The notes below the pieces were generated by a model, which did not search any database, had not been told where the DNA came from, and saw only the letters and a program-made list of their open reading frames with translations. Both the position numbers and the translations under genes were made by a program. From assembly GCA_038496445.1 (NCBI GenBank), contig JALMLS010000052.1:79706-143705 (forward strand): 64,000 nt of DNA, written 5' to 3'. This DNA is from Trichosphaerium sp. ATCC 40318 (lineage: Eukaryota; Protista; Tubulinea). The stretch's first letter is position 1. Each line of letters begins with the position of its first letter. Below are positions 2,506 to 61,851 of this stretch, piece after piece.

Positions 2506-4401
2506 ATGCATCGTCTCAACGTTCATATAGCAATACTGGCCTGTGTCATCGTGTTTACGTGCGGTAGTTTGCAGTATACTATACTGCCTGGGCCTTATAC
2601 TTGGAGTGACGCCGTTAGCGCGTGTATTGCAAAGTACTAGAGTGTTTTTGTTGGTTTTTGTAACGTTTACTGTTTAGCGGGCAACAAATTGCCGAAATTC
2701 ATAACGCACAAGATTTTAATGCCATGGTACCGCTTGTAACGGTGCACACTTGGCTTGGAGGAAAACAACGAGACTCTTTACCACTTTCAACTTGTCTGGC
2801 AGGGTACGACCATATATACAACGATTTACCTGGTATCAAATGATTGAATACTGCATCTTCAATTATCCAAAACGGTCTTGTTTGACTGCTCGTTTACCAG
2901 AAAATAACATTTTCTAGTGATACTGGTAGCTTGTTCGATTGTGCATGTGATAGCTGTGTAACTAGTGCCTCATTCTGCCCCGATTGCCAAAATCACCTTG
3001 ACGGATATTATTGGCTAAGTAATAGTGCTGTTTCGTTGATTTCAACAGATCTATACACTAGCAGCACGTGAGTGCCTTTCCAAAAAACAAGTAATCTAAC
3101 TTTGTTTAGAAATATTACGAGCTATCTAACGACGTACTGGACGGACAACAATCCAACTATAGTTCTTGGAGCTACGGGTACTGAGCGACAGGAGTGTTTG
3201 GAAATGCTTAGTACAACGAAAAAATTGAACGATGGAGCTTGTACAGCCATGAGAGCTGTAGCGTGCCAACCTTTACCACCAACCACTACGCCACCTACAA
3301 CAGAAACCCCAACTACTATACCTCCTACAACAGAATCTCCTACAACAGAAGCACCAACAACACTTCCACCTACCACTGTATCTCCTACTACAGCGCCTCC
3401 AACAACAACAGCACCAACAACAGGTTCTCCAACTACTATACCTCCTACACCAGGTTCTCCAACTACTATATCTCCTACAACAGAATCTCCCACAGGTTCT
3501 CCAACTACTATACCTCCCACAATAGGTTCTCCAACGACAATAGTACCTACTACAGAGGCTCCAACAATGATGCTAGCAAGCACTAATTGTAAGACTTACT
3601 ATTTTTTTCAACAAACACTTTTTTCTTTCTAATTGTTACTTCAGTCAGCTTGCGTTTCTCAAAGCCTCTATCGATCACTGAGGTTGATTCTTTTGCTAAT
3701 CTCATTGCTCCTGTATTCGGTGTCCGTGAGGAGTTTATATCAGCTAAATCAGAAGGAACTAGCTCTAAAAGGCAAGCTTCGAACACTGTTGTAGTAACAG
3801 TAACTCAAGATCCACGTACGGGAAATCAAAGGCTTACCTTAACATATGTACTAATTAACCCTTACTTTTAGTTGTTTCTGAACCTATATCAGACTTTGTA
3901 GATAATAAACTATCCGATCCAGCAACATTTGTTAGTGTTCAACTAATAGCATCAGATAACTTTGGTGCTGATGTTGAACTTGTTGGTGCATTATTACCAC
4001 AAGAAGAAGAACCACCAACACTTGGATTTCGTAATGGATATATCTTTGGTATAGCTATTTTGATAGGTACAACGCACTTACTTTTAATGGCAGTTTGTAA
4101 CATGTCAAAAAACTTTTAGCTTTAGTTGTTGATTGTTAATTGCGTGATGTTTTTCGTAGTTCTTGTCGTTGTACTTGTAGTACTTATTGTGCTGGTTGTT
4201 TTAATACAACAACGAGCTAGCGCTAATAAGATTAACAAAGCTGCGGCTGAATATAGAAGATCTGCATCTTCTAAAGTAATGAATAAGGTAAGCAACAATA
4301 CAACATCAATATTTTTGTTAATATTTGTTATTCATTAGGGTGAAAGCATTGGTGTATTTAATTCTCCAAGATCAGACACTGAACTCATAGTGGCAAATTG
4401 A
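2506..4401 (+). CDS. Type I membrane protein: signal peptide, C-type lectin-like domain, Pro/Thr mucin-like stalk, TM helix, short tail
   Basis: MHRLNVHIAILACVIVFTCG signal; YTWSDAVSAC...QIAEIHN...TWLGG...YW...ECLEM...LNDGAC...VACQ resembles a CTLD; PPTTESPTT repeats; hydrophobic LVVVLVVLIVLVVLI followed by QQR. Confidence 0.7.
3270..3570 (+). repeat. Imperfect 15/30-nt coding tandem repeat (PTTIPPTTGS-type), mucin-like stalk
   Basis: Recurrent ccaactactatacctcctacaacag / caggttctccaactactata units. Confidence 0.85.
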
Positions 4402-9077: not shown

Positions 9078-12000
9078 TTACATTTCCATGTCCATGTCAT
9101 CTAACATATTCATGCTATCATCATAATCGTTAACTTGTTGATTTCCTTGAATCTTTTCAATGTTAAAAACTAGGTTTCCATCCACTGCATCTATATGTAC
9201 GATAGCATTTGAGTCAAGTTTTTGTGATAAAATAAGCCTTGATAACTCCGTTGTGACGTTTCTCTCAATGAATCTTTTTAGAGGTCTCGCACCATACACA
9301 GGATCATATGTTTCTTCTGTGATGTACGTATAAGCATTATCTGTAAGCTTAATCCCGACATTTCGTTCAGCAAGTCGTTTTTGAAGGGCTGTGAATTGAA
9401 GTGTGACAATTTTTCTGATATCGTCTTGTGACAATGGAGAAAAGATGACCAAGTCATCCAATCTGTTCAAAAACTCTGGTGAAAAATGAGCTTTGACTTG
9501 ACCCATGACGATTTGTTTTGTCTGTTCAGAAATAACATTGCCCTTTGCTTGTTCAAGAAGTTGATGGGCGCCAATATTTGAAGTCTAAAAAAGAAAAAAG
9601 TAAGAAAGTGATTGATTTCAACTAACAGATTCTGTTAAGATACGTACCATAATAAGCACAACATTACTAAAATCTACTGTTTTCCCTTGAGAATCAGTTA
9701 ATCTGCCATCATCCATGACTTGAAGTAAGGTATTTAAGACAAGCTTATGTGCTTTTTCAATTTCATCGAAAAGAACAACAGAGTAAGGTCTTCTTCTCAC
9801 TGCCTCCGTTAGTTGGCCACCTTGTTCGTATCCAACATATCCAGGAGGTGCACCAATAAGTCTGGCAACGGCATGTTGTTCCATGTACTCTAAGGAAACA
9901 AGTTAACAAAAAATAACGAACGCTAAGGGTGTGCGTTATAATTACGAACCTGACATATCAAGTCTTACGATTAAGTTTTCGTCATCAAACAGCTCAGCTG
10001 CAAGTGCTTTTGCAAGTTCAGTTTTACCGACACCTGTAGGTCCAAGGAATAGGAATGATGCTGTAGGCTTTCCAGGTCGTGAAAGGCCAGCTCTTGATCT
10101 CAAAACTGCCTATTTTGCAAAAAGTTAGAACAAGGACACAAAAAAAATCTATTAAAAGTCGTACCTCTGCAACTGCCTTTACTGCTTCGTTTTGACCGAT
10201 AAGACGTTCATGAAGGTGCTTACCAAGGTCTAGAATCTTTTCCCTTTCAGTTTGGCCGAGTTTAGAAACAGGAATGCCAGTCCATCGAGAAACAACTTCA
10301 GCGATATGCTCGGCTGTCACGTTTTCAGTCAACAAAAAGTCTTCCTTTCTCTGCTCGATATCTTTTGCCATCGACTCGATAGCTTTTTTTGTTTCAGGTA
10401 TAGCACCATATTCAATATCAGCTACCCTACTCATATCGCCTTGTCTCTTCGCTATAGCCAATTTTCGTTTAAGTGCGTCCAACTTTAAGCGCATGTTTGA
10501 GATGTTATCGAATACGCCCTTCTCGTGGTCATATCGCAGTTTTAGGGGTTGTAGTTTTTCGTTAACGTTTGCTAGTTCCTTCTTGGCTTCCGTAAGCCTT
10601 GTTTTAGACCCTTCATCCTTTTCTTTTTCTAGATGTTTGATTTGAACTTGAAGGTGCATTGATCGCCTCTCAAGAATATCAAGTTCTTCGGGTTGAGAAT
10701 CAAGTTGTACTCTTGCTTTTGCGCATGCCTCGTCCATTAAATCAATGGCTTTATCTGGAAGGAATCTTTGGGTAACCTACAGAAATAACATTAGTACAAG
10801 CCAAGCACGACCAAACAACCGGAAAACTATCAAGAATTATTTTTCAAACTCAAAATGTTTTTGTACAGTTTTTACGTACATATCGATCAGATAGACTAGC
10901 ACATGCTACCAATGCGGCATCTTGTATACTGACACCATGGTGTGTTTCGTATTTTTCTTTGATACCTCTAAGAATAGAGACAGTATCTTCAACAGAAGGT
11001 TCATTTACAAGGACTTGCTGAAATCTCCTTTCGAAAGCAGCATCCTTTTCCATGTACTGTCGGTACTCATCAAGTGTAGTTGCGCCAATACAGCGTAAAT
11101 CACCGCGAGCAAGCATAGGTTTAAGCAAGTTGGCAGCGTCCATAGCACCATCTGTTTTACCAGCGCCAAGAACCAAGTGAATTTCATCAATGAAAAGAAT
11201 GATTTTTCCTTTTGATTCAGATACTTCTTGTAGCACTGATTTTAGCCTTTCTTCAAATTCTCCTCTATATTTTGCTCCTGCGACAAGTGCACCCATATCA
11301 AGTGATATAACACGACAGTTCAAGTTATGAGGTACATCTCCAGAAACAATTCTTTGAGCGATACCTTCAACTATTGCACTAAATTTGCCGTTAGCTCAAA
11401 CGAATGAGAATTAACCTAAGAAAAGGTTGAGTTACGTTTTACCGACACCAGGGTCTCCAATTAGTACTGGGTTATTCTTTCTTCTTCGACTCAGAACTTG
11501 AATAACACGACGTACTTCATCATCTCTTCCGATAACAGGATCCAAGTCTGATGCTTCTGCTTGTGCTACTAGATCTCTTCCATACTTTTCAAGACATTCA
11601 TATGTGGCTTCAGCACGTTGTGTTGTTACTTTTTTCTTCCCTCTGACTTGTTTTACGGCTTCGAGAAGACGAGACTACAAAGTTTTTTTTAGAAATTTCG
11701 TTTTTTTTCATTCTTAGCATACTACGTACCTCGTTTAGGCCTCCTTGTTGGAAACAAGCATGTACCGTTTTATCTTTAGGTAATACACGCATCAAGTGAT
11801 CAAGAGAAACAAAGTGGTCTCCATTTTCGGCCTGTTTTTTTCTTGCCGCTTGAAATATTTTTGACAGATCAATAGATGGCGCTGGATGTTGTGGAGGAGG
11901 GTTTTGACGCGGAATTCTTAATATTTGTTGCTCTAAGGCTTGTTCTAAAGGCGTATTAGGCGATTAATAAAATAAACACTAATTACGTACGTATTTTCTT

Positions 12001-12910: not shown

Positions 12911-19550
<6,640 letters not shown>

Positions 19551-20428
19551 CTGCAATTTTTGTTTCTGTCAACTACCTTTTGTAATTACGAGTGTTGGTT
19601 TATAAATAAAAAATAATACGCTCTATTTGTAGTTCCTTTGTAATGCCCATAGTCAAAGTGTTGAGAAAACCAGTATTGACTGTTTTGTACTATGTTTCAA
19701 TGTCTATGAACGTGAAGTACACAAATACTTGACCACTAGTGCTGCTGATGTTAATATGCACAAAAAAGCAAGAAAAAATACATTAGTTTTTTTTTTTTGA
19801 ATTGATGTGCAATCGATTGGTCGTATGTATTAGAAAGGTTCAATCTATTGACACTGAAATAAAATCCACTACTTTAAGTATACTATAATTGCGTAAAGTT
19901 GTAACATGGTGGTGAGATATCAGTTAATAAACCGAAATAGTTTTTGAATGAAAAAATCTATCATAAGTGTGAGTAATTTATGACAGAGATAACCGTAAAA
20001 ATGGTAAGTAATTGTTATTATTTATTGAACTATGCAAAGTCAGTGTAGTGTTAACGCTATTTTTTTGTGTAGCTATTTGGGCTCGAAACACTGCTGTTAC
20101 TATATCTAATTGCAGATTTAATGAGTGCTATGATTATAGTATACATCTAATCGAAGGCAATATGGTACACTAGTTTTTGACATTAAAAACTGATACTATC
20201 TCTTGTTCTGTTGTCAGCAACAAAAAATACTGTGCTACTATAGTGCTAATTCAAGAGGAGATGCACCGTCACCTGGTTCTATCATTTTGTTTTCAAAATG
20301 GAAAAAGTATTAGGCGAAAAATCGTTACAGTGGTTGAATGGCAAATAAACTATTTATAAGCACCAAACACTCTACAGATAAAACACTTTATTTACATACT
20401 GACAAGGGCGGTATCTTTTTTTTTTGGT

Positions 20429-23400
20429 TTACTTGGAACCACAAAACTGAGCCTTCCAGTCTAACCAATCGTTGACTTGTATGAATTTTTTTTCAAAAAG
20501 AACTTTGATCTTCTTTTTCTTAAAGAATAATCCAGATATAGCTTCAGTTGATTGTTGATTACCAATATCATTACCACATTTACAATATAATTTACCTATT
20601 TTAGATGCAACTCTTTCTTCAAGATGCTCAACAACCATATTTTTTTTTTCCAAAAAATCAAAAGTTTTTTGAATCATAACCAAATGCTTCCCTTGTTGTC
20701 CGGGGTACTGCAAAGGTATAAAATCATTTGATGTACCTAATATAATACTACACTTTTTACAGCATAAAAGAATATCAGACTGCTTTGTATCTTGTTTAAG
20801 TATAGTAGAAGTAGAAACTGAACTTTTTTTTTGTTGCTGTTGTTTTTTTTTTTGAAGATTAGGATCTTGCCAAGACTTGTTAAGTACGCCCATTTTTTTA
20901 AGCGCATCTGCGCATGCAAGAAGTTCTGCTGTTTTTTTTGTTTTATGAGAAGCTCTACCATGAGTAAATTGTGTTTTTGTATAGAAAGTAGGAGGTATTG
21001 GTGCCTAATAGAACATAAATAAACAAAGCAAATTCAAAAAGTAGAAAAATTGTTTCTTTTGTTTTTATGTTGTTTCGCCTTCCTTGTTTTTTGACGAGTT
21101 ACAAATAGAGGAAGGCTAAAGCATACAAATTGCCATCTTTTTAGAGGTTGTAAAACTTATCACAACAAGGCAACAAACAGCAATGTGTCAAACAAAAAGT
21201 ACTCAAAAAAATTTCTGTTTTACCTTGACTATAAATTCTCTGTTTGTCTTATCTTGTTCGTATGTATATACTAATTTCCCTCTGGCTCTTTGCCAGTAGC
21301 TGTGTAGCATGACTTTTGGGTTTTGGTCGACTTTACGTAATTTAGATAATACTGGTAATGTCTGCAAAAAGAAATACATAAAAAATGAGATAATTCGGGG
21401 GTTGTGTGTTCATACCTTGTTTGCTTCGCTAGCTATAATATTAATGAGATCATCAATATGATCTTTTGGTATTGAGCGCCCATTCTAGATGTTCTTTCAT
21501 GAGTTTCAATGTCACCTTAGACAAAAAATTTCGTACCTTTCTCAAACATTCACTTATTACGCTAAGGTAAAAAAACACGTGAGAAACAGAAACTAAGAAT
21601 TCGGTCTTGTATTTACCTTGGCTTTGCTGTCTTATCAGTACTCTGTAGTATGGCTTTCCCAACTTTCTCTCCAATACCAATTGCATTGTATTTACTCATA
21701 ACAATACTACAAAGACGTAACTAACCAACAAAATGGTGTAGAAAATAAAAATAACACAAACCTTGGGTTCACATCCTCTTTGCGCCCTACAGCATCTCGC
21801 CATTGGTACACTGCAAGAGCGACTGATTTCTACTATCATCAGAATTGAATATATAACGAATAAAATACCTGTAGTTCGTTTAAAGGAGCTCCCTTAGCTT
21901 TTCTCCAATCGCGAAGATGTTTTCCTAAAAAAGTGTCAGTACAAACGAACACAAAGAGCGTTCAACGTACGTAAAGCGTCTTTAATGCTTCTGTTATGAT
22001 TCTCCCACATTTTGAGCGTCATATCTTGACAATTCTCCCAAGCCACGTGTAACAACGTTTTACCCTTACCTACAGAAGTAGCCAAAAATTAAAAATCTAC
22101 GAGAGCAGTTTGGATTCAGTACGTACTCGTCAATGCTTTGTTTGGTTCCTCTAGGCTATCAAGAAGACGTGCTATACGTCTAAAGATATATACAAGATAA
22201 TGTGAGTCCAATCTAGCGTAGTGAGTCATCACAGCACTCCATGATTTGATAGGCTGTCTCCAATCGCTTCTTGCTAGTTCTTTCGTTTTAGGTTCGTTAC
22301 AAAAGTAGTCTAACAGCCCGCCAAGGCTTACTCTAACAAAGAATATAAGAAGAAAGAACAATCTAAAGCACAGATATCTCTTGACGATATTACAAGACAC
22401 TCGTACTTGTCTGGACCTTCATTGTTTTCTCCTGCATGCTCTAATAAAACAAGATTAAAAATTAAAGGAAGAGAAAAAAATATGCGTGATCGATTACCTT
22501 TGTACAGTTCAATGCCAACTTGTGTATCGAATACATTAACAACATATAAACCAAAGTCACGTTGTAACCAAATAAGATCTTGATCGGCTCTAAAGAAATA
22601 AAATAAACAACTGATACATTCTAAAAAGTGATTTTTTTTTCTACTGTTTCCAAGGATGTGTGGTCGTTTGTTCGTACCCGTGAAGTATCTTCAGGATCTT
22701 AGTATTATTAAATGGCTCATTTAGGATATGAATATGATCACGAAGAGCTAAACCATCAACAAGAAAATCGTGGGAACGCGGATCATTACTAGAGTTTTGA
22801 ACTGAGATTTGAATGATACATGTCATGCCGTAATACGAATAATCCATGTGTTGCTATAGCGCACGTTAAACAACACATAAACAAGTACATCATAGCATAG
22901 TACAACAACCCCAGTCGTACACTACAAAGAAGAAAAAAAAAAGCGAAAAAAAACCGTTTGTTGGTGACGTGTTTTATTTACCTCTGTATCTACACCGAAG
23001 CATTTGACTTTATTCAAAACGTTTACTAAACTAGCCAATTGTTGTTCTGTTTCAACTATCGTTAGATTTTCTTCCTTCATCTTAGTAGCGGGCTAAAGGC
23101 AAGGCGTTAGAATGGAGTTGAGTTATTGTTAAATCAGTTGTAGTATTTGACGCCTGTCATTCTACAAACAGCGCTAACGCGCTAGCAGTGACTGTGGATA
23201 AAAGCTCAGCCCAGAAACAATTACTCATAAAAAAACCGAAAAGATCTCTAAGAGGAGTATATCGCCTGCGATCAGGTTCTTTTTACGTACTGGTGTTGGT
23301 ATATCATCCTTCCAAGTGTATTGAGAAGGCTGTTTACAAAGCAGTTAACAATCTGTTATGTTTAAATGTGTCACTCACGTCAATGGTGCTTATCAAGTCA

Positions 23401-23754
23401 TTAATTTCGTGTTTGAAAGGGTGTTCGTATGGCGGATTAGAGTATGACGCTAAAATAGACAAAATAAATATCAAAGCCATTGGAAGTACTCCCGCACGTA
23501 ATGGATAAGCACTGTGGTACTTTTTTAACAGTTTAGGCTTTATTGGACCAGCGTTGTTATTAACACCTCTTTTCGCGTTGGCCACGCGTCTGAAACAACG
23601 ACATAAGACAAGGAGTCGACATTGCCGATGTCTATTTTCAAAAAGCGACGTACGGTGTTAGATGTGATCGGAATACGCTTTTCACAGCCATGGAGATACG
23701 TTTGTGACGGAATGAGGATGAAAGGTCAACTGGGGTCGCGGAATGGCATTCCAT
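20429..23754 (-). CDS. RRP6-like DEDD-Y 3'-5' exoribonuclease + HRDC + dsRBD + RIG-I/MDA5 CTD-like zinc domain (start ATG 23754 or 23691)
   Basis: HPFKHEI; ExoI FGVDTE|QHMDYSYYGMTCIIQIS; ExoII LHG|ADQDLIWLQRDFGLYVVNVFDT; ExoIII DWRQ...YARLDSHYLVYI; HRDC AVYQWRDAVGRKEDVNP; dsRBD NPKVMLHSYWQ...GRASHKTKKTAELLACADALKKMG; terminal CKKC...GKLYCKCGNDIG. Confidence 0.85.
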
Positions 23755-23893
23755 GAACTAAACGTGCCCTGAACGACAGTCGCGACGAGTCCTTTTTTTT
23801 GAGAGACTTTCTAAACCCTTGCTAAAACTGGCGTTACGTTAAGAGTAGTGTTATGTACACGTGACAAGTTAATTTTTCTAATTTTCACTTTAT

Positions 23894-24883
23894 TTAAATG
23901 GGTGTGTAACAAACAGTACACCAGCATCTCGATACAAAAGTATTGTGCATCAGTATACAACCAATTGGAGTCACTGCTCCAAGACCAATCAACGCATTTT
24001 TACAACCATTATCCTTACATCCTGGAGCATTAATGCCGCATGTTTGAGTTAGAGTGATGTCGCTCTGTGGTACACAAGCACAAACACGTTCTGTACCACC
24101 AGCTAAGAAATCACGTGAGTTGAGAAGAGCTTGATACTTGGAAAAGACGTACCAGGGAGGTATCTGTGGTACAATTTACATTCTGTTCCTTCCGTCTGCG
24201 ATTGGCAGCCATTATCTTGGCATCTTCCTAAGAATGGATTCCATCTACAGCATCCCGTTGACTAGACAACACGTGTGAGTAAAAAACGAGGTCGAAAGGC
24301 CGATAGCTTACTACTGGAGGCTCAGTTGGTACTGGTGGTTTAGTAGTAGGTGCTCTTGTAGTTGGCGCTGGTGGATCGCAACAGCAGCAAGCACACTCTG
24401 CAGATGCCTTATGGAATGCGTCGTTAGGACAACAACGAAGCTCGAAAACGTCTGTCGTCTTTTTACATTCATTTACAGTCATAAGAGGTTTACCCAAAGC
24501 ATTACACTTTCTAAATAGTACGAAACAAGTTAGTAAAACTTCAATACGAAGGAAGCTCTCCGACTAAAAAGACCGAATCACGTGGGAATAATTTAATTTT
24601 GGTTTCTAAAGTTTTTCGGGTTCAAAGTAAAGAGATGGCTCTTGAAAAGGATAAATATATTACATGTTACGTACGCTTGACATGCTTGTTTTGCTGATAG
24701 TAATGCGTCATCACAAGCTTCTGTTTTATTACAAGACGATTCAATAACAACGCCTGAGTTTACAGGAACGCAAGGCTGACAGAATACCTAGTTGAAGTTA
24801 GACCCGAGAGATACTCAAGTAATACGTACCGATGCTAAGAGACATGCGGCAGCAAGACAAACAAGTAGAGAAGAGACCCTCAT
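23894..24883 (-). CDS. Small secreted cysteine-rich protein with Pro/Thr linker
   Basis: Signal MRVSSLLVCLAAACLLAS; Cys-rich N-domain ending CACCCC; PPAPTTRAPTTKPP linker; two related C-terminal units (CQDNGCQ...CKLYH...VCAC and CKDNGCK...CILMH...RCWC); stop at 23896-23894. Confidence 0.7.
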
Positions 24884-59915: not shown

Positions 59916-60312
59916 TTTTTCTTTGTGGTTCATTCCAAAAGAATAAACGTTTATTAATAAACTCTCAACACTCATGTTAAATGTACGTTAATGCCACAAC
60001 TACTGCATATGCAAAACATATCAAAAGATTCAAACTAACTCTAAAGAACGTTGACAACAACCCACATGTGCATTTTTGCACTATTCTAACATTCCAAATC
60101 TAGAAGTGGAGTTCTGAGATACAAAACTATGAAGTTGTCAAGCGTTTACATTTTGGCACATTATTAGACTGCGTAGGGGTATTGAATTACAGAGTAAATA
60201 AAATGGGATCTACTAGGTAGTGTATTTTTTCAGGCAAAAAAAGTTGAAAGTCACTTGTTTTCTCCGTGCAGTCTCAAAACGTCATCTAATCATCCCAAAC
60301 ACGCAACAAATC

Positions 60313-61851
60313 ATGAGTTTCTCAGGCGTTTCAATAGAACAAGCACTAACGTATTTTACAAAGAAAAACACAGAAGCTTTCGTTAAAATAATGGCAAACC
60401 AACACCAACTGTTTATGACGCAACTTGAAAGTATTTTAGACCTCTCAAACAAACGTCTTACAGAAAATCTTGATAATCTTTTCAAAGACACGTATATGAT
60501 TGTTAACCCAAAGAAACATGTCCCAGCAAGAGCGAAAGACCTTGTACCACATTATGAGGGCACCACAAAGTCACCAGAGTGTAAACGAACACAAAAACAA
60601 GACGTGAGAGGCGAAGAGGCAATAAACATTCTCAAACTTCCAATTGAGATCATTGCGTCTATTATAAGGCAAACATCTTCAAAGTCGAGATTTCGTTTTG
60701 CCCAATCATGTCATTTGATGGCTGATATAATTCATACTATTGTTGGATATAAACAAGTTTGTCTTCATTCTCCTCAAGACATTTTAAAGATAAGACAGTA
60801 TAGAGGCATTAAAAACAATAGTATTATTACTCTAAAGTTTGATAATACTGTATATTCATTATTGGATGGCTGTCGTGATATAAGGGTCACTAGAAAATAT
60901 AGGTATATAACAGATAGTGATTTAAAAGCAATTTCAGGCAGTGTTCAGACCATTGATCTATCAAGATGTATGAATGTGACAGATGAAGGAATAAAGGAGT
61001 TAAAGGGTGTTCATACAGTTAATCTAAATGGCACGTCAGTTACAGACGAAGGCATTAAAGCACTTGCTGGCGTTCATACAATTTACCTTAATAGCACATC
61101 AATTACGGATAAAGGTCTTAAATATTTAAGAGGTGTTCACAAAATCAGTCTTCAACTCTGCAACCATGTTACAGATAGAGGGATCAAAGCATTAAAAGGT
61201 GTTCATACAATTTACCTTAATAGCACATCAATTACAGATAAAGGTCTTAAATATTTAAGAGGTGTTCGCAAAATCAGTCTTTCGTCCTGTTTCCAAGTAA
61301 CAGATAGAGGGATCAAAGCATTGAAGGGTGTTCAAAAAATTAATCTTGATAGCACTTCAGTTTCAGATGAAGGTATCAAAGCACTACATGGTGTTCACAA
61401 TATCATGATTTCAAATTGCAGACATGTGACAGATGAAGGCATTAAAGCACTTGCTGGAGTTCATATTATTTTCCTCAATGGCACTTTAGTAACAGACAAA
61501 GGTGTTAAAGCACTTGCTGGAGTTCATACAATTACCCTTGATAGCAGTTTAGTTACAGATGAAGGTATTAAGTGTTTGGCAGGTGTTCATACAATCAGTC
61601 TTTCATTCTGCAAACATGTAACAGATAAAGGGATCAAAGCTTTAAAAGGAGTTCATACAATTATCCTTAGTCAAACTTCAGTTTCAGATGAAGGTATAAA
61701 AGCCTTGAAGGGTGTTCATATAATATACCTGCGAAACACAAAGGTGACCAAAGAAGGCATTAAAGAACTTAAAGGTGCTAAGATTTATGTTGGTGGCACT
61801 TCAATTGATATTCACGATGATGAACTACGTGATTATAATGTACAAAAATAA
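60313..61851 (+). CDS. Intronless F-box + leucine-rich-repeat protein
   Basis: Single ORF; F-box-like ILKLPIEIIASII..RFAQSC; about 13 LRRs of type GVHTIxLxxTxVTDEGIKAL. Confidence 0.85.
   Translation: MSFSGVSIEQALTYFTKKNTEAFVKIMANQHQLFMTQLESILDLSNKRLTENLDNLFKDTYMIVNPKKHVPARAKDLVPHYEGTTKSPECKRTQKQDVRGEEAINILKLPIEIIASIIRQTSSKSRFRFAQSCHLMADIIHTIVGYKQVCLHSPQDILKIRQYRGIKNNSIITLKFDNTVYSLLDGCRDIRVTRKYRYITDSDLKAISGSVQTIDLSRCMNVTDEGIKELKGVHTVNLNGTSVTDEGIKALAGVHTIYLNSTSITDKGLKYLRGVHKISLQLCNHVTDRGIKALKGVHTIYLNSTSITDKGLKYLRGVRKISLSSCFQVTDRGIKALKGVQKINLDSTSVSDEGIKALHGVHNIMISNCRHVTDEGIKALAGVHIIFLNGTLVTDKGVKALAGVHTITLDSSLVTDEGIKCLAGVHTISLSFCKHVTDKGIKALKGVHTIILSQTSVSDEGIKALKGVHIIYLRNTKVTKEGIKELKGAKIYVGGTSIDIHDDELRDYNVQK

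Follow-up and report, generated by a model that had tools for sequence, protein, structure and literature searches.

An RRP6-family exoribonuclease of the amoeba Trichosphaerium sp. that carries a double-stranded RNA-binding domain and a predicted divergent beta-tent zinc domain

RRP6/EXOSC10 (PM/Scl-100) is the exoribonuclease of the DEDDy class that is associated with the nuclear exosome. Canonical RRP6 reaches its substrates via the PMC2NT domain, which connects it to Rrp47/C1D and Mtr4, and via a C-terminal tail, which connects it to the exosome core; this C-terminal exosome-associating region shows poor conservation, and no profile exists for it. Here we describe a gene for an RRP6-like protein in a stretch of 64,000 nucleotides (nt) of the Trichosphaerium sp. 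ATCC 40318 genome (contig JALMLS010000052.1, positions 79,706 to 143,705; hereafter the window, in whose numbering all coordinates are given). The gene, at 20429-23754 on the minus strand, is an expressed gene for an RRP6-family 3'-5' exoribonuclease of Trichosphaerium, a marine amoeba. The protein keeps the catalytic core of the family, lacks PMC2NT, and in place of the docking tail carries a double-stranded RNA-binding domain (dsRBD), a basic linker and a basic domain predicted to adopt the beta-tent fold. With modest confidence, we favour the interpretation that it is an exosome-independent RRP6 paralogue directed at duplex-containing RNA.

For the C-terminal part of the protein, the closest described families are the C-terminal domains (CTDs) found in RLRs, the RIG-I-like receptors RIG-I, MDA5 and LGP2 (PF11648), the Yippee/Mis18 domains (PF03226) and a beta-tent family of plants, At4g08330 (PF24046). 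The RLR CTDs are attached to DExD/H helicases, whereas the Yippee/Mis18 and At4g08330 proteins are small, stand-alone and not fused to RNA enzymes. The Yippee and RLR CTD families share the beta-tent fold, of which a cradle-shaped binding site is typical, and usually appear in each other's lists of non-significant matches; Lupas et al., who made these observations, detected RIG-I in animals only (PMC4287342). In a later paper, the RLR CTD is called a Yippee domain outright (PMC10804680).

The gene structure was derived from the minus-strand reading frames and from assembled RNA-seq (Logan) contigs of four public runs aligned to 20300-23900. X1, X3 and X4 denote contig sets from separate RNA-seq runs, and L001 is a Joint Genome Institute (JGI) transcript contig of 2382 nt. 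Together these data define a single gene of 17 exons separated by 16 introns of 39-219 nt, all GT-AG; the 15 joints listed from the RNA contigs are all CT..AC on the plus strand, that is, GT..AG for a minus-strand gene. The exons, in the order of transcription, are 23754-23654, 23589-23498, 23449-23379, 23329-23291, 23092-22982 and 22853-22678 (exons 1-6), 22589-22498, 22440-22407, 22332-22127, 22069-21971, 21924-21869 and 21829-21762 (exons 7-12), and 21706-21617, 21561-21537, 21484-21416, 21361-21224 and 21004-20429 (exons 13-17). Translation of the spliced exons yields a coding sequence of 2043 nt, or 680 codons plus the stop codon (20431-20429), with no internal stop. Two of the exons are micro-exons of 34 nt (22440-22407) and 25 nt (21561-21537), both seen in RNA contigs and not findable by eye. 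In the published draft genome of Trichosphaerium, the G+C content is 37.7% and introns and exons average 75 bp and 154 bp, respectively, figures with which the window agrees (PMC10521059).

A single RNA contig, X1 record 1 (1745 nt), extends from 23076 to 20416 with all introns removed and spans the exons for the exonuclease, the HRDC domain, the dsRBD and the zinc domain. An earlier reading of the window, made from the sequence alone (hereafter the sequence-only reading), had called for RNA evidence of one transcript across 21004/21224 and the HRDC exons, and this contig provides it. That reading had also proposed a GT-AG intron at 21005-21223 that splits the dsRBD, and exactly those 219 bases are skipped in the RNA contigs of three runs (X1, X3 and X4). 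L001 aligns over 23724-20373 with three introns retained and contributes the junction 23654/23589. The start of the protein is either the ATG at 23754, which lies 30 nt upstream of the L001 5' end and outside the RNA coverage, or Met22 at 23691, and the two are equally possible; an in-frame stop lies directly upstream of 23757, and the N-terminus is short whichever start codon applies. The features quoted in the sequence-only account of the gene are all present, but that account lacked the 17-exon structure, the micro-exons, the second start and a second splice acceptor at 21330.

The reading frame is kept between strains: five of the seven strain differences in the coding sequence are synonymous (5:2), and those in the last exon comprise two synonymous changes and one conservative one. 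Introns 3 and 4 (23330-23378 and 23093-23290, minus strand) are retained in X1 record 2, X3 record 10, X4 record 15 and L001, alongside spliced forms, which reflects either intron retention or the presence of DNA or pre-mRNA in the libraries.

The exonuclease (EXO) domain, identified by Pfam and by its relatives in PDB, spans residues 112-296 (23062-22161; this and all following features of the gene are on the minus strand). The Pfam profile DNA_pol_A_exo1 matches it with 127.5 bits (E 6e-37) in a 339-residue piece that covers EXO and HRDC (L001:533-1549), and all 13 PDB matches to this piece obtained with phmmer are RRP6/EXOSC10 proteins, namely Trypanosoma brucei RRP6 (E 3e-39) and, at about 1e-35, yeast Rrp6 and human EXOSC10. 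The five DEDDy catalytic residues are all kept, as they are in RRP6/EXOSC10: D136 and E138 in the motif VDTE (residues 135-138; 22993-22982), D201 in HGADQD (residues 196-201, spanning the intron 22677-22590), and Y277 and D281 in YARLD (residues 277-281; 22220-22206). The three motifs, which had been described as intact from the letters of the sequence, are paired in the alignment with T. brucei RRP6 (4nlc) with VDLE, HGARED and YAQQD, respectively. The 34-nt micro-exon encodes an acidic insertion of 11 residues (EHAGENNEGPDK) within the EXO domain, which distinguishes the amoeba protein from RRP6/EXOSC10 and has no counterpart in T. brucei RRP6.

The EXO domain, which in RRP6 is followed by an HRDC domain, is followed here by a linker helix and a putative, divergent HRDC at residues ~310-443 (22069-21416). 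As regards the HRDC assignment of the sequence-only reading, the PDB alignments to RRP6 extend into this region, as does a BLASTP alignment with the HRDC region of P0004, the closest database relative of the EXO+HRDC part (E 5e-06), but the Pfam score is below the cutoff (20.9 versus 23.8 bits). Upstream of EXO there is a short N-terminal region of ~105 residues (23754-23400), which retains the RRP6 linker motif HP[FY]..E[IL]N in the form of HPFKHEIN (23423-23400), aligned with HPYLYELN of P0004. No Pfam match to PMC2NT was found in the N-terminal 69 residues (L001:34-240), in contrast to canonical RRP6; P0004 retains the end of a PMC2NT domain recognised by Pfam. The closest relatives of the EXO+HRDC part, among the proteins of 186-593 residues that the homologue search covered, are ordinary RRP6 fragments with only 35% identity.

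In the region where RRP6 has its exosome-association region, the amoeba protein instead encodes a dsRBD, a linker and the zinc domain. The dsRBD, residues 458-527 (21319-20891), is split by the 219-nt intron 21223-21005. The Pfam dsrm profile matches over its full length (hidden Markov model [HMM] positions 1-66 of 66) with 27.5 bits in P0001, the spliced C-terminal transcript product of 243 residues, and with 29.5 bits in P0001:1-100, against a cutoff of 23, so that the dsRBD which the sequence-only reading had obtained by removing the intron is borne out across the whole model. The last exon alone scores just 15.9 bits against dsrm; the domain is thus recognisable only after splicing, a good argument for a coding junction at 21005-21223. 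Helix 1 contains NPKVML...Q (NPKVML at residues 457-462), and helix 2 begins with KTKKTAE (residues 510-516), an instance of the KKxA[KE] motif that contacts the RNA backbone in dsRBDs; a GPxH loop such as canonical dsRBDs have cannot be made out. The K/Q-rich linker noted in the sequence-only reading is recovered by translation and composition as a K/Q/S-rich low-complexity segment at residues 528-567 (20890-20771), with an isoelectric point (pI) of ~10.4.

The zinc domain was delineated with Pfam profiles at residues 568-680 (20770-20432). Its putative zinc ligands are two Cys pairs 55 residues apart, C571/C574 (CxxC) within CCKKC (residues 570-574; 20764-20750) and C630/C632 (CxC) within CKCG (residues 630-633; 20584-20573), in line with the C-terminal zinc domain of the sequence-only reading. 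The domain is basic, with 21 K+R versus 13 D+E and a pI of 9.2. The presence of two Cys pairs about 55 residues apart, the basic composition and membership in the beta-tent superfamily, as predicted by the profiles, are shared with the RLR CTDs, whose four zinc ligands sit pairwise at the apex of the two beta-meanders.

The sequence-only reading had likened this domain to the CTD of MDA5 and RIG-I, and the profile searches do not sustain that assignment. Pfam Yippee-Mis18 ranks first and is the sole profile above its cutoff (27.0-29.6 bits, cutoff 26.6, E ~1e-6), with a match that covers the first two thirds of the model (HMM 2-71 of 108), whereas RIG-I_C-RD comes next and fails to reach its cutoff (19.3-19.7 bits versus 25.6, E ~1e-3), with a match over HMM 3-108 of 117. 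The At4g08330 profile yields 10.9 bits. The N-terminal 80 residues of the domain alone score 28.8 bits with Yippee-Mis18 and 14.7 bits with RIG-I_C-RD, and the C-terminal 64 residues alone produce no Pfam match. At the profile level the domain therefore fits Yippee/Mis18/cereblon better, an outcome that the sequence-only reading itself had named as speaking against an RLR CTD identity. The profiles lean towards Yippee/Mis18 for the first meander and leave room for an RLR-like second meander. In the search of the C-terminal module with phmmer against all PDB chains, which we take to include RLR CTD entries, no RLR CTD, Yippee, Mis18 or cereblon structure was matched at E<=10; the matches obtained (titin and a TPR protein) were discarded as chance ones.

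In a language-model search, the neighbours of the zinc domain were small stand-alone beta-tent proteins: At4g08330 came first (0.91), 61 of the top 100 Atlas clusters belonged to the Yippee-Mis18 set, and FAM72, STEEP1, Mss4, SelR and GFA followed; this search compares whole small proteins and is therefore blind to CTDs attached to helicases. The residues after the second Cys pair, GNDIGNQQ, include neither W nor Y, judged by eye and with no Yippee sequence aligned. The aromatic cage predicted for Yippee by Lupas et al. consists of Y43, F45, W82 and Y84 of Drosophila yippee (PMC4287342). Because the Yippee and RLR families routinely match each other, "divergent beta-tent zinc domain" is the apt label for what the profiles predict here. 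The profile evidence does not establish an RLR CTD outside animals; beta-tent domains are widespread in any case.

Two splice forms exist, which differ in the 3' splice site of intron 15, at 21361 or 21330. Acceptor 21361, used by the X1 contig only, gives the in-frame protein of 680 residues. Acceptor 21330 removes 31 nt and shifts the frame, with a stop after 19 residues, which results in a protein of 462 residues that contains EXO and HRDC without the dsRBD or the zinc domain. The join of 21416 to 21330 is seen in X3 record 9, which leaves exactly 94 nt (exons 14 and 15) before the piece that starts at 21330, and matches a loose end in X4 record 11; the MMETSP0405 peptide P0013 ends in the frameshifted 19-residue tail. 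L001 retains intron 15. The sequence context is stronger at 21361, with a polypyrimidine tract and CAG, versus AAAG at 21330. The RNA contigs give no isoform ratios.

An exhaustive phmmer (HMMER) search with the zinc domain against 1.84 billion representative proteins retrieved only the gene's own product P0001 and P0002, a spurious repeat protein that was rejected as a homologue. Word-indexed searches with the zinc domain and with P0001 yielded no other relative; no relative of the zinc domain was found among metagenome and viral contigs, neither the dsRBD nor the zinc domain had a match in NCBIfam, PADLOC and PHROGs, and tblastn revealed no paralogue of either domain in the window beyond this gene. 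No helicase motif or Pfam helicase match is present upstream of the zinc domain, in agreement with the helicase-free architecture previously proposed. A literature search found no RRP6-dsRBD or nuclease-Yippee fusion, and the supplementary tables that accompany the genome paper have no text entry for RRP6, EXOSC10, HRDC or Yippee (PMC10521059). The EXO+HRDC product groups with a EukProt/MMETSP peptide of MMETSP0405, whose taxon, 498012, is Trichosphaerium sp. ATCC 40318 (Amoebozoa). The sequence-only reading was right in that its protist host, as opposed to an animal, is the amoebozoan Trichosphaerium sp., and in that neither the databases, searched with parts of the protein, nor the literature consulted yielded a described protein with this architecture: as far as these sources show, the domain families are known, and their combination is new and so far unique to one amoeba.

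These features suggest how an exosome-independent RRP6 paralogue could be directed at duplex-containing RNA. The dsRBD would hold the enzyme to an RNA helix of the A form, and the distributive RRP6 active site would then trim or degrade the single-stranded 3' extension adjoining the duplex; candidate substrates are the 3' tails that structured precursors carry, small-RNA precursors in hairpin or duplex form, and double-stranded RNA (dsRNA) whose 3' ends overhang. None of this would require the exosome core. The beta-tent domain would provide a second contact, with an RNA end or nucleotide held in the cradle-shaped site, with a partner protein, or with itself as in Mis18, and the choice between acceptors 21361 and 21330 would determine whether the cell makes the long form, with its targeting module, or the short form, with EXO and HRDC alone. 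The likeness in logic is to ERI-1/3'hExo, a DEDDh exonuclease that has a nucleic-acid-binding SAP domain and trims 3' ends beside RNA duplexes: there, as in the scheme proposed here, a DEDD-superfamily 3'-5' exonuclease is fused to a holder of structured or duplex RNA, so that trimming falls on the neighbouring 3' tail. ERI-1/3'hExo is DEDDh rather than DEDDy/RRP6 and carries SAP rather than a dsRBD and a beta-tent domain, and no homology is claimed.

Several observations weigh against this interpretation. No orthologue of the RRP6-dsRBD-zinc architecture is present in any of the databases searched. AlphaFold2 run without an alignment gave predicted local distance difference test (pLDDT) values of 36.1 for residues 549-680 and 34.7 for residues 445-680; homologues being lacking, these models are unusable, and, owing to this low confidence, it is the profile matches that carry the fold assignment of the zinc domain. 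RNA binding by the zinc domain, which the scheme allows for, is putative. The HRDC domain is weak, with the sub-threshold Pfam match confined to HMM 2-29 of 68. The long form may be a minor isoform because the contigs of two of the three sample sets use the frameshifting acceptor. If the genome has no canonical PMC2NT-bearing RRP6, this protein must also perform the housekeeping work of RRP6.

This last point leads to the reading, which we consider unlikely, that the protein is the sole RRP6 of the organism, linked to the exosome by lineage-specific contacts, with the extra domains acting as mere accessory RNA binders; it partly overlaps the other interpretations. The protein resembles the RRP6 enzymes of T. 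brucei, yeast and human as closely as it does its nearest database relatives, the pre-EXO linker motif is retained, and no second RRP6 of Trichosphaerium was detected among the matches checked, of which the three relatives that were traced belong to other samples. However, these matches were limited to proteins of 186-593 residues, a range outside which a full-length canonical RRP6 would fall and that would thus hide one, and PMC2NT is missing, with other domains filling the C-terminal region. A tentative possibility, somewhat better placed, is that recognition of RNA is left to the dsRBD and the RRP6 core alone, and that the beta-tent domain serves protein-protein contacts or oligomerisation, in the manner of Mis18 and Yippee/YPEL proteins, and so would dimerise the enzyme or bring in a partner. 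The best and sole above-cutoff profile match, to Yippee-Mis18, the prevalence of Yippee-Mis18 among the nearest Atlas clusters and the plant At4g08330 beta-tent family as the top neighbour all point in this direction, as does the oligomerisation through which Mis18 Yippee-like domains are reported to work (PMC4818781). Conversely, the Yippee-Mis18 match stops short of the last third of the model, the predicted aromatic cage is seemingly not kept (by eye, with no Yippee sequence aligned), and the context of a nuclease, a dsRBD and a basic linker favours a role in nucleic acid binding.

The more far-reaching and speculative proposal, which builds on the sequence-only reading, regards the zinc domain as a functional counterpart of the RLR CTD, perhaps even truly related to it, that reads dsRNA ends, as an end cap or through a 5'-triphosphate, and that, together with the dsRBD, would deliver the RRP6 site to the 3' strand of a foreign or aberrant duplex; the protein would then be a splice-switched, helicase-free, antiviral sense-and-degrade effector in a host exposed to a heavy traffic of giant-virus genes. 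We regard this as quite improbable. The RIG-I_C-RD profile is matched almost end to end and the basic zinc domain adjoins a dsRBD and a nuclease; the CxC form of the second Cys pair is presumably that of MDA5, a motif comparison reproduced by no statistical test. The ~1581 gene models of giant-virus origin in the Trichosphaerium genome make virus pressure plausible (PMC10521059). Yet the RIG-I_C-RD score is 6 bits under its cutoff and 10 bits under that of Yippee-Mis18 on the same residues, beta-tent families often cross-match at such scores (PMC4287342), the C-terminal half of the domain alone matches no profile, pairwise similarity to solved RLR CTDs was not found by phmmer at E<=10, and the PADLOC and viral searches yielded no relatives. 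The RLR CTDs follow helicases and, in the survey of Lupas et al., RIG-I was detected only in animals (PMC4287342), whereas the amoebozoan domain follows an RRP6 exonuclease, HRDC and dsRBD. Least probable of all is that the C-terminal module is mostly untranslated, with the 462-residue EXO+HRDC protein predominating through acceptor 21330 or through retention of intron 15 and the fusion being a minor or noisy product. Although X3 and X4 contigs and P0013 use 21330, L001 retains intron 15, and 21361 is shown by the X1 contig only, contigs cannot give isoform ratios, and the downstream frame of 237 residues is open and encodes two recognisable domains, of which one is interrupted by an intron that is removed correctly; these features, together with the two synonymous changes and one conservative change in the last exon, are hard to square with untranslated sequence. 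Translation of the long frame is favoured by the stronger context of acceptor 21361, the two downstream domains and the synonymous excess in the coding sequence.

The surroundings of the gene in the window were also annotated. An ORF for the C-terminus of an ABC transporter of the ABCC/MRP type (19407-19550, plus strand) is convergent with the RRP6-like gene, whose 3' end lies ~880 bp away; the transporter gene ends at 19550. There is no sizeable open reading frame (ORF) antisense to the RRP6-like gene, and no Rfam RNA family was detected across the window. Mucin-like repeats rich in Pro and Thr (PTT-type runs) occur in two ORFs, at 3072-3632 (plus strand) and 24228-24497 (minus strand), which may represent a family of secreted or surface proteins; the latter has a Cys-rich head and is located just upstream of the RRP6-like gene. 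A long exon at 10024-10737 (minus strand) encodes the middle (coiled-coil) region and the linker to the second ATPase of an Hsp104/ClpB-type chaperone. At 60220-61851 (plus strand), a single-exon ORF of 543 residues consists of leucine-rich repeats of ~24 residues with a consensus near VTDEGIKALKGVHTI, many copies of which are near-identical.

The value of these findings is limited in that the architecture is found in one species, without orthologues, and its function is inferred. RRP6 is usually steered by its partners Rrp47, Mtr4 and the exosome core, and here, with these docking parts lost, two RNA- or ligand-binding modules are wired straight to the nuclease. Should the proposed mechanism be true, the Trichosphaerium protein would be a natural case of duplex-guided, exosome-independent 3' trimming by RRP6, and its zinc domain would be the first beta-tent domain of the Yippee/RLR-CTD superfamily fused to a nuclease. 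Such a fusion could reveal what the poorly understood Yippee-like domains bind, and the choice of splice site by which the targeting module is kept or lost would be a simple regulatory device.

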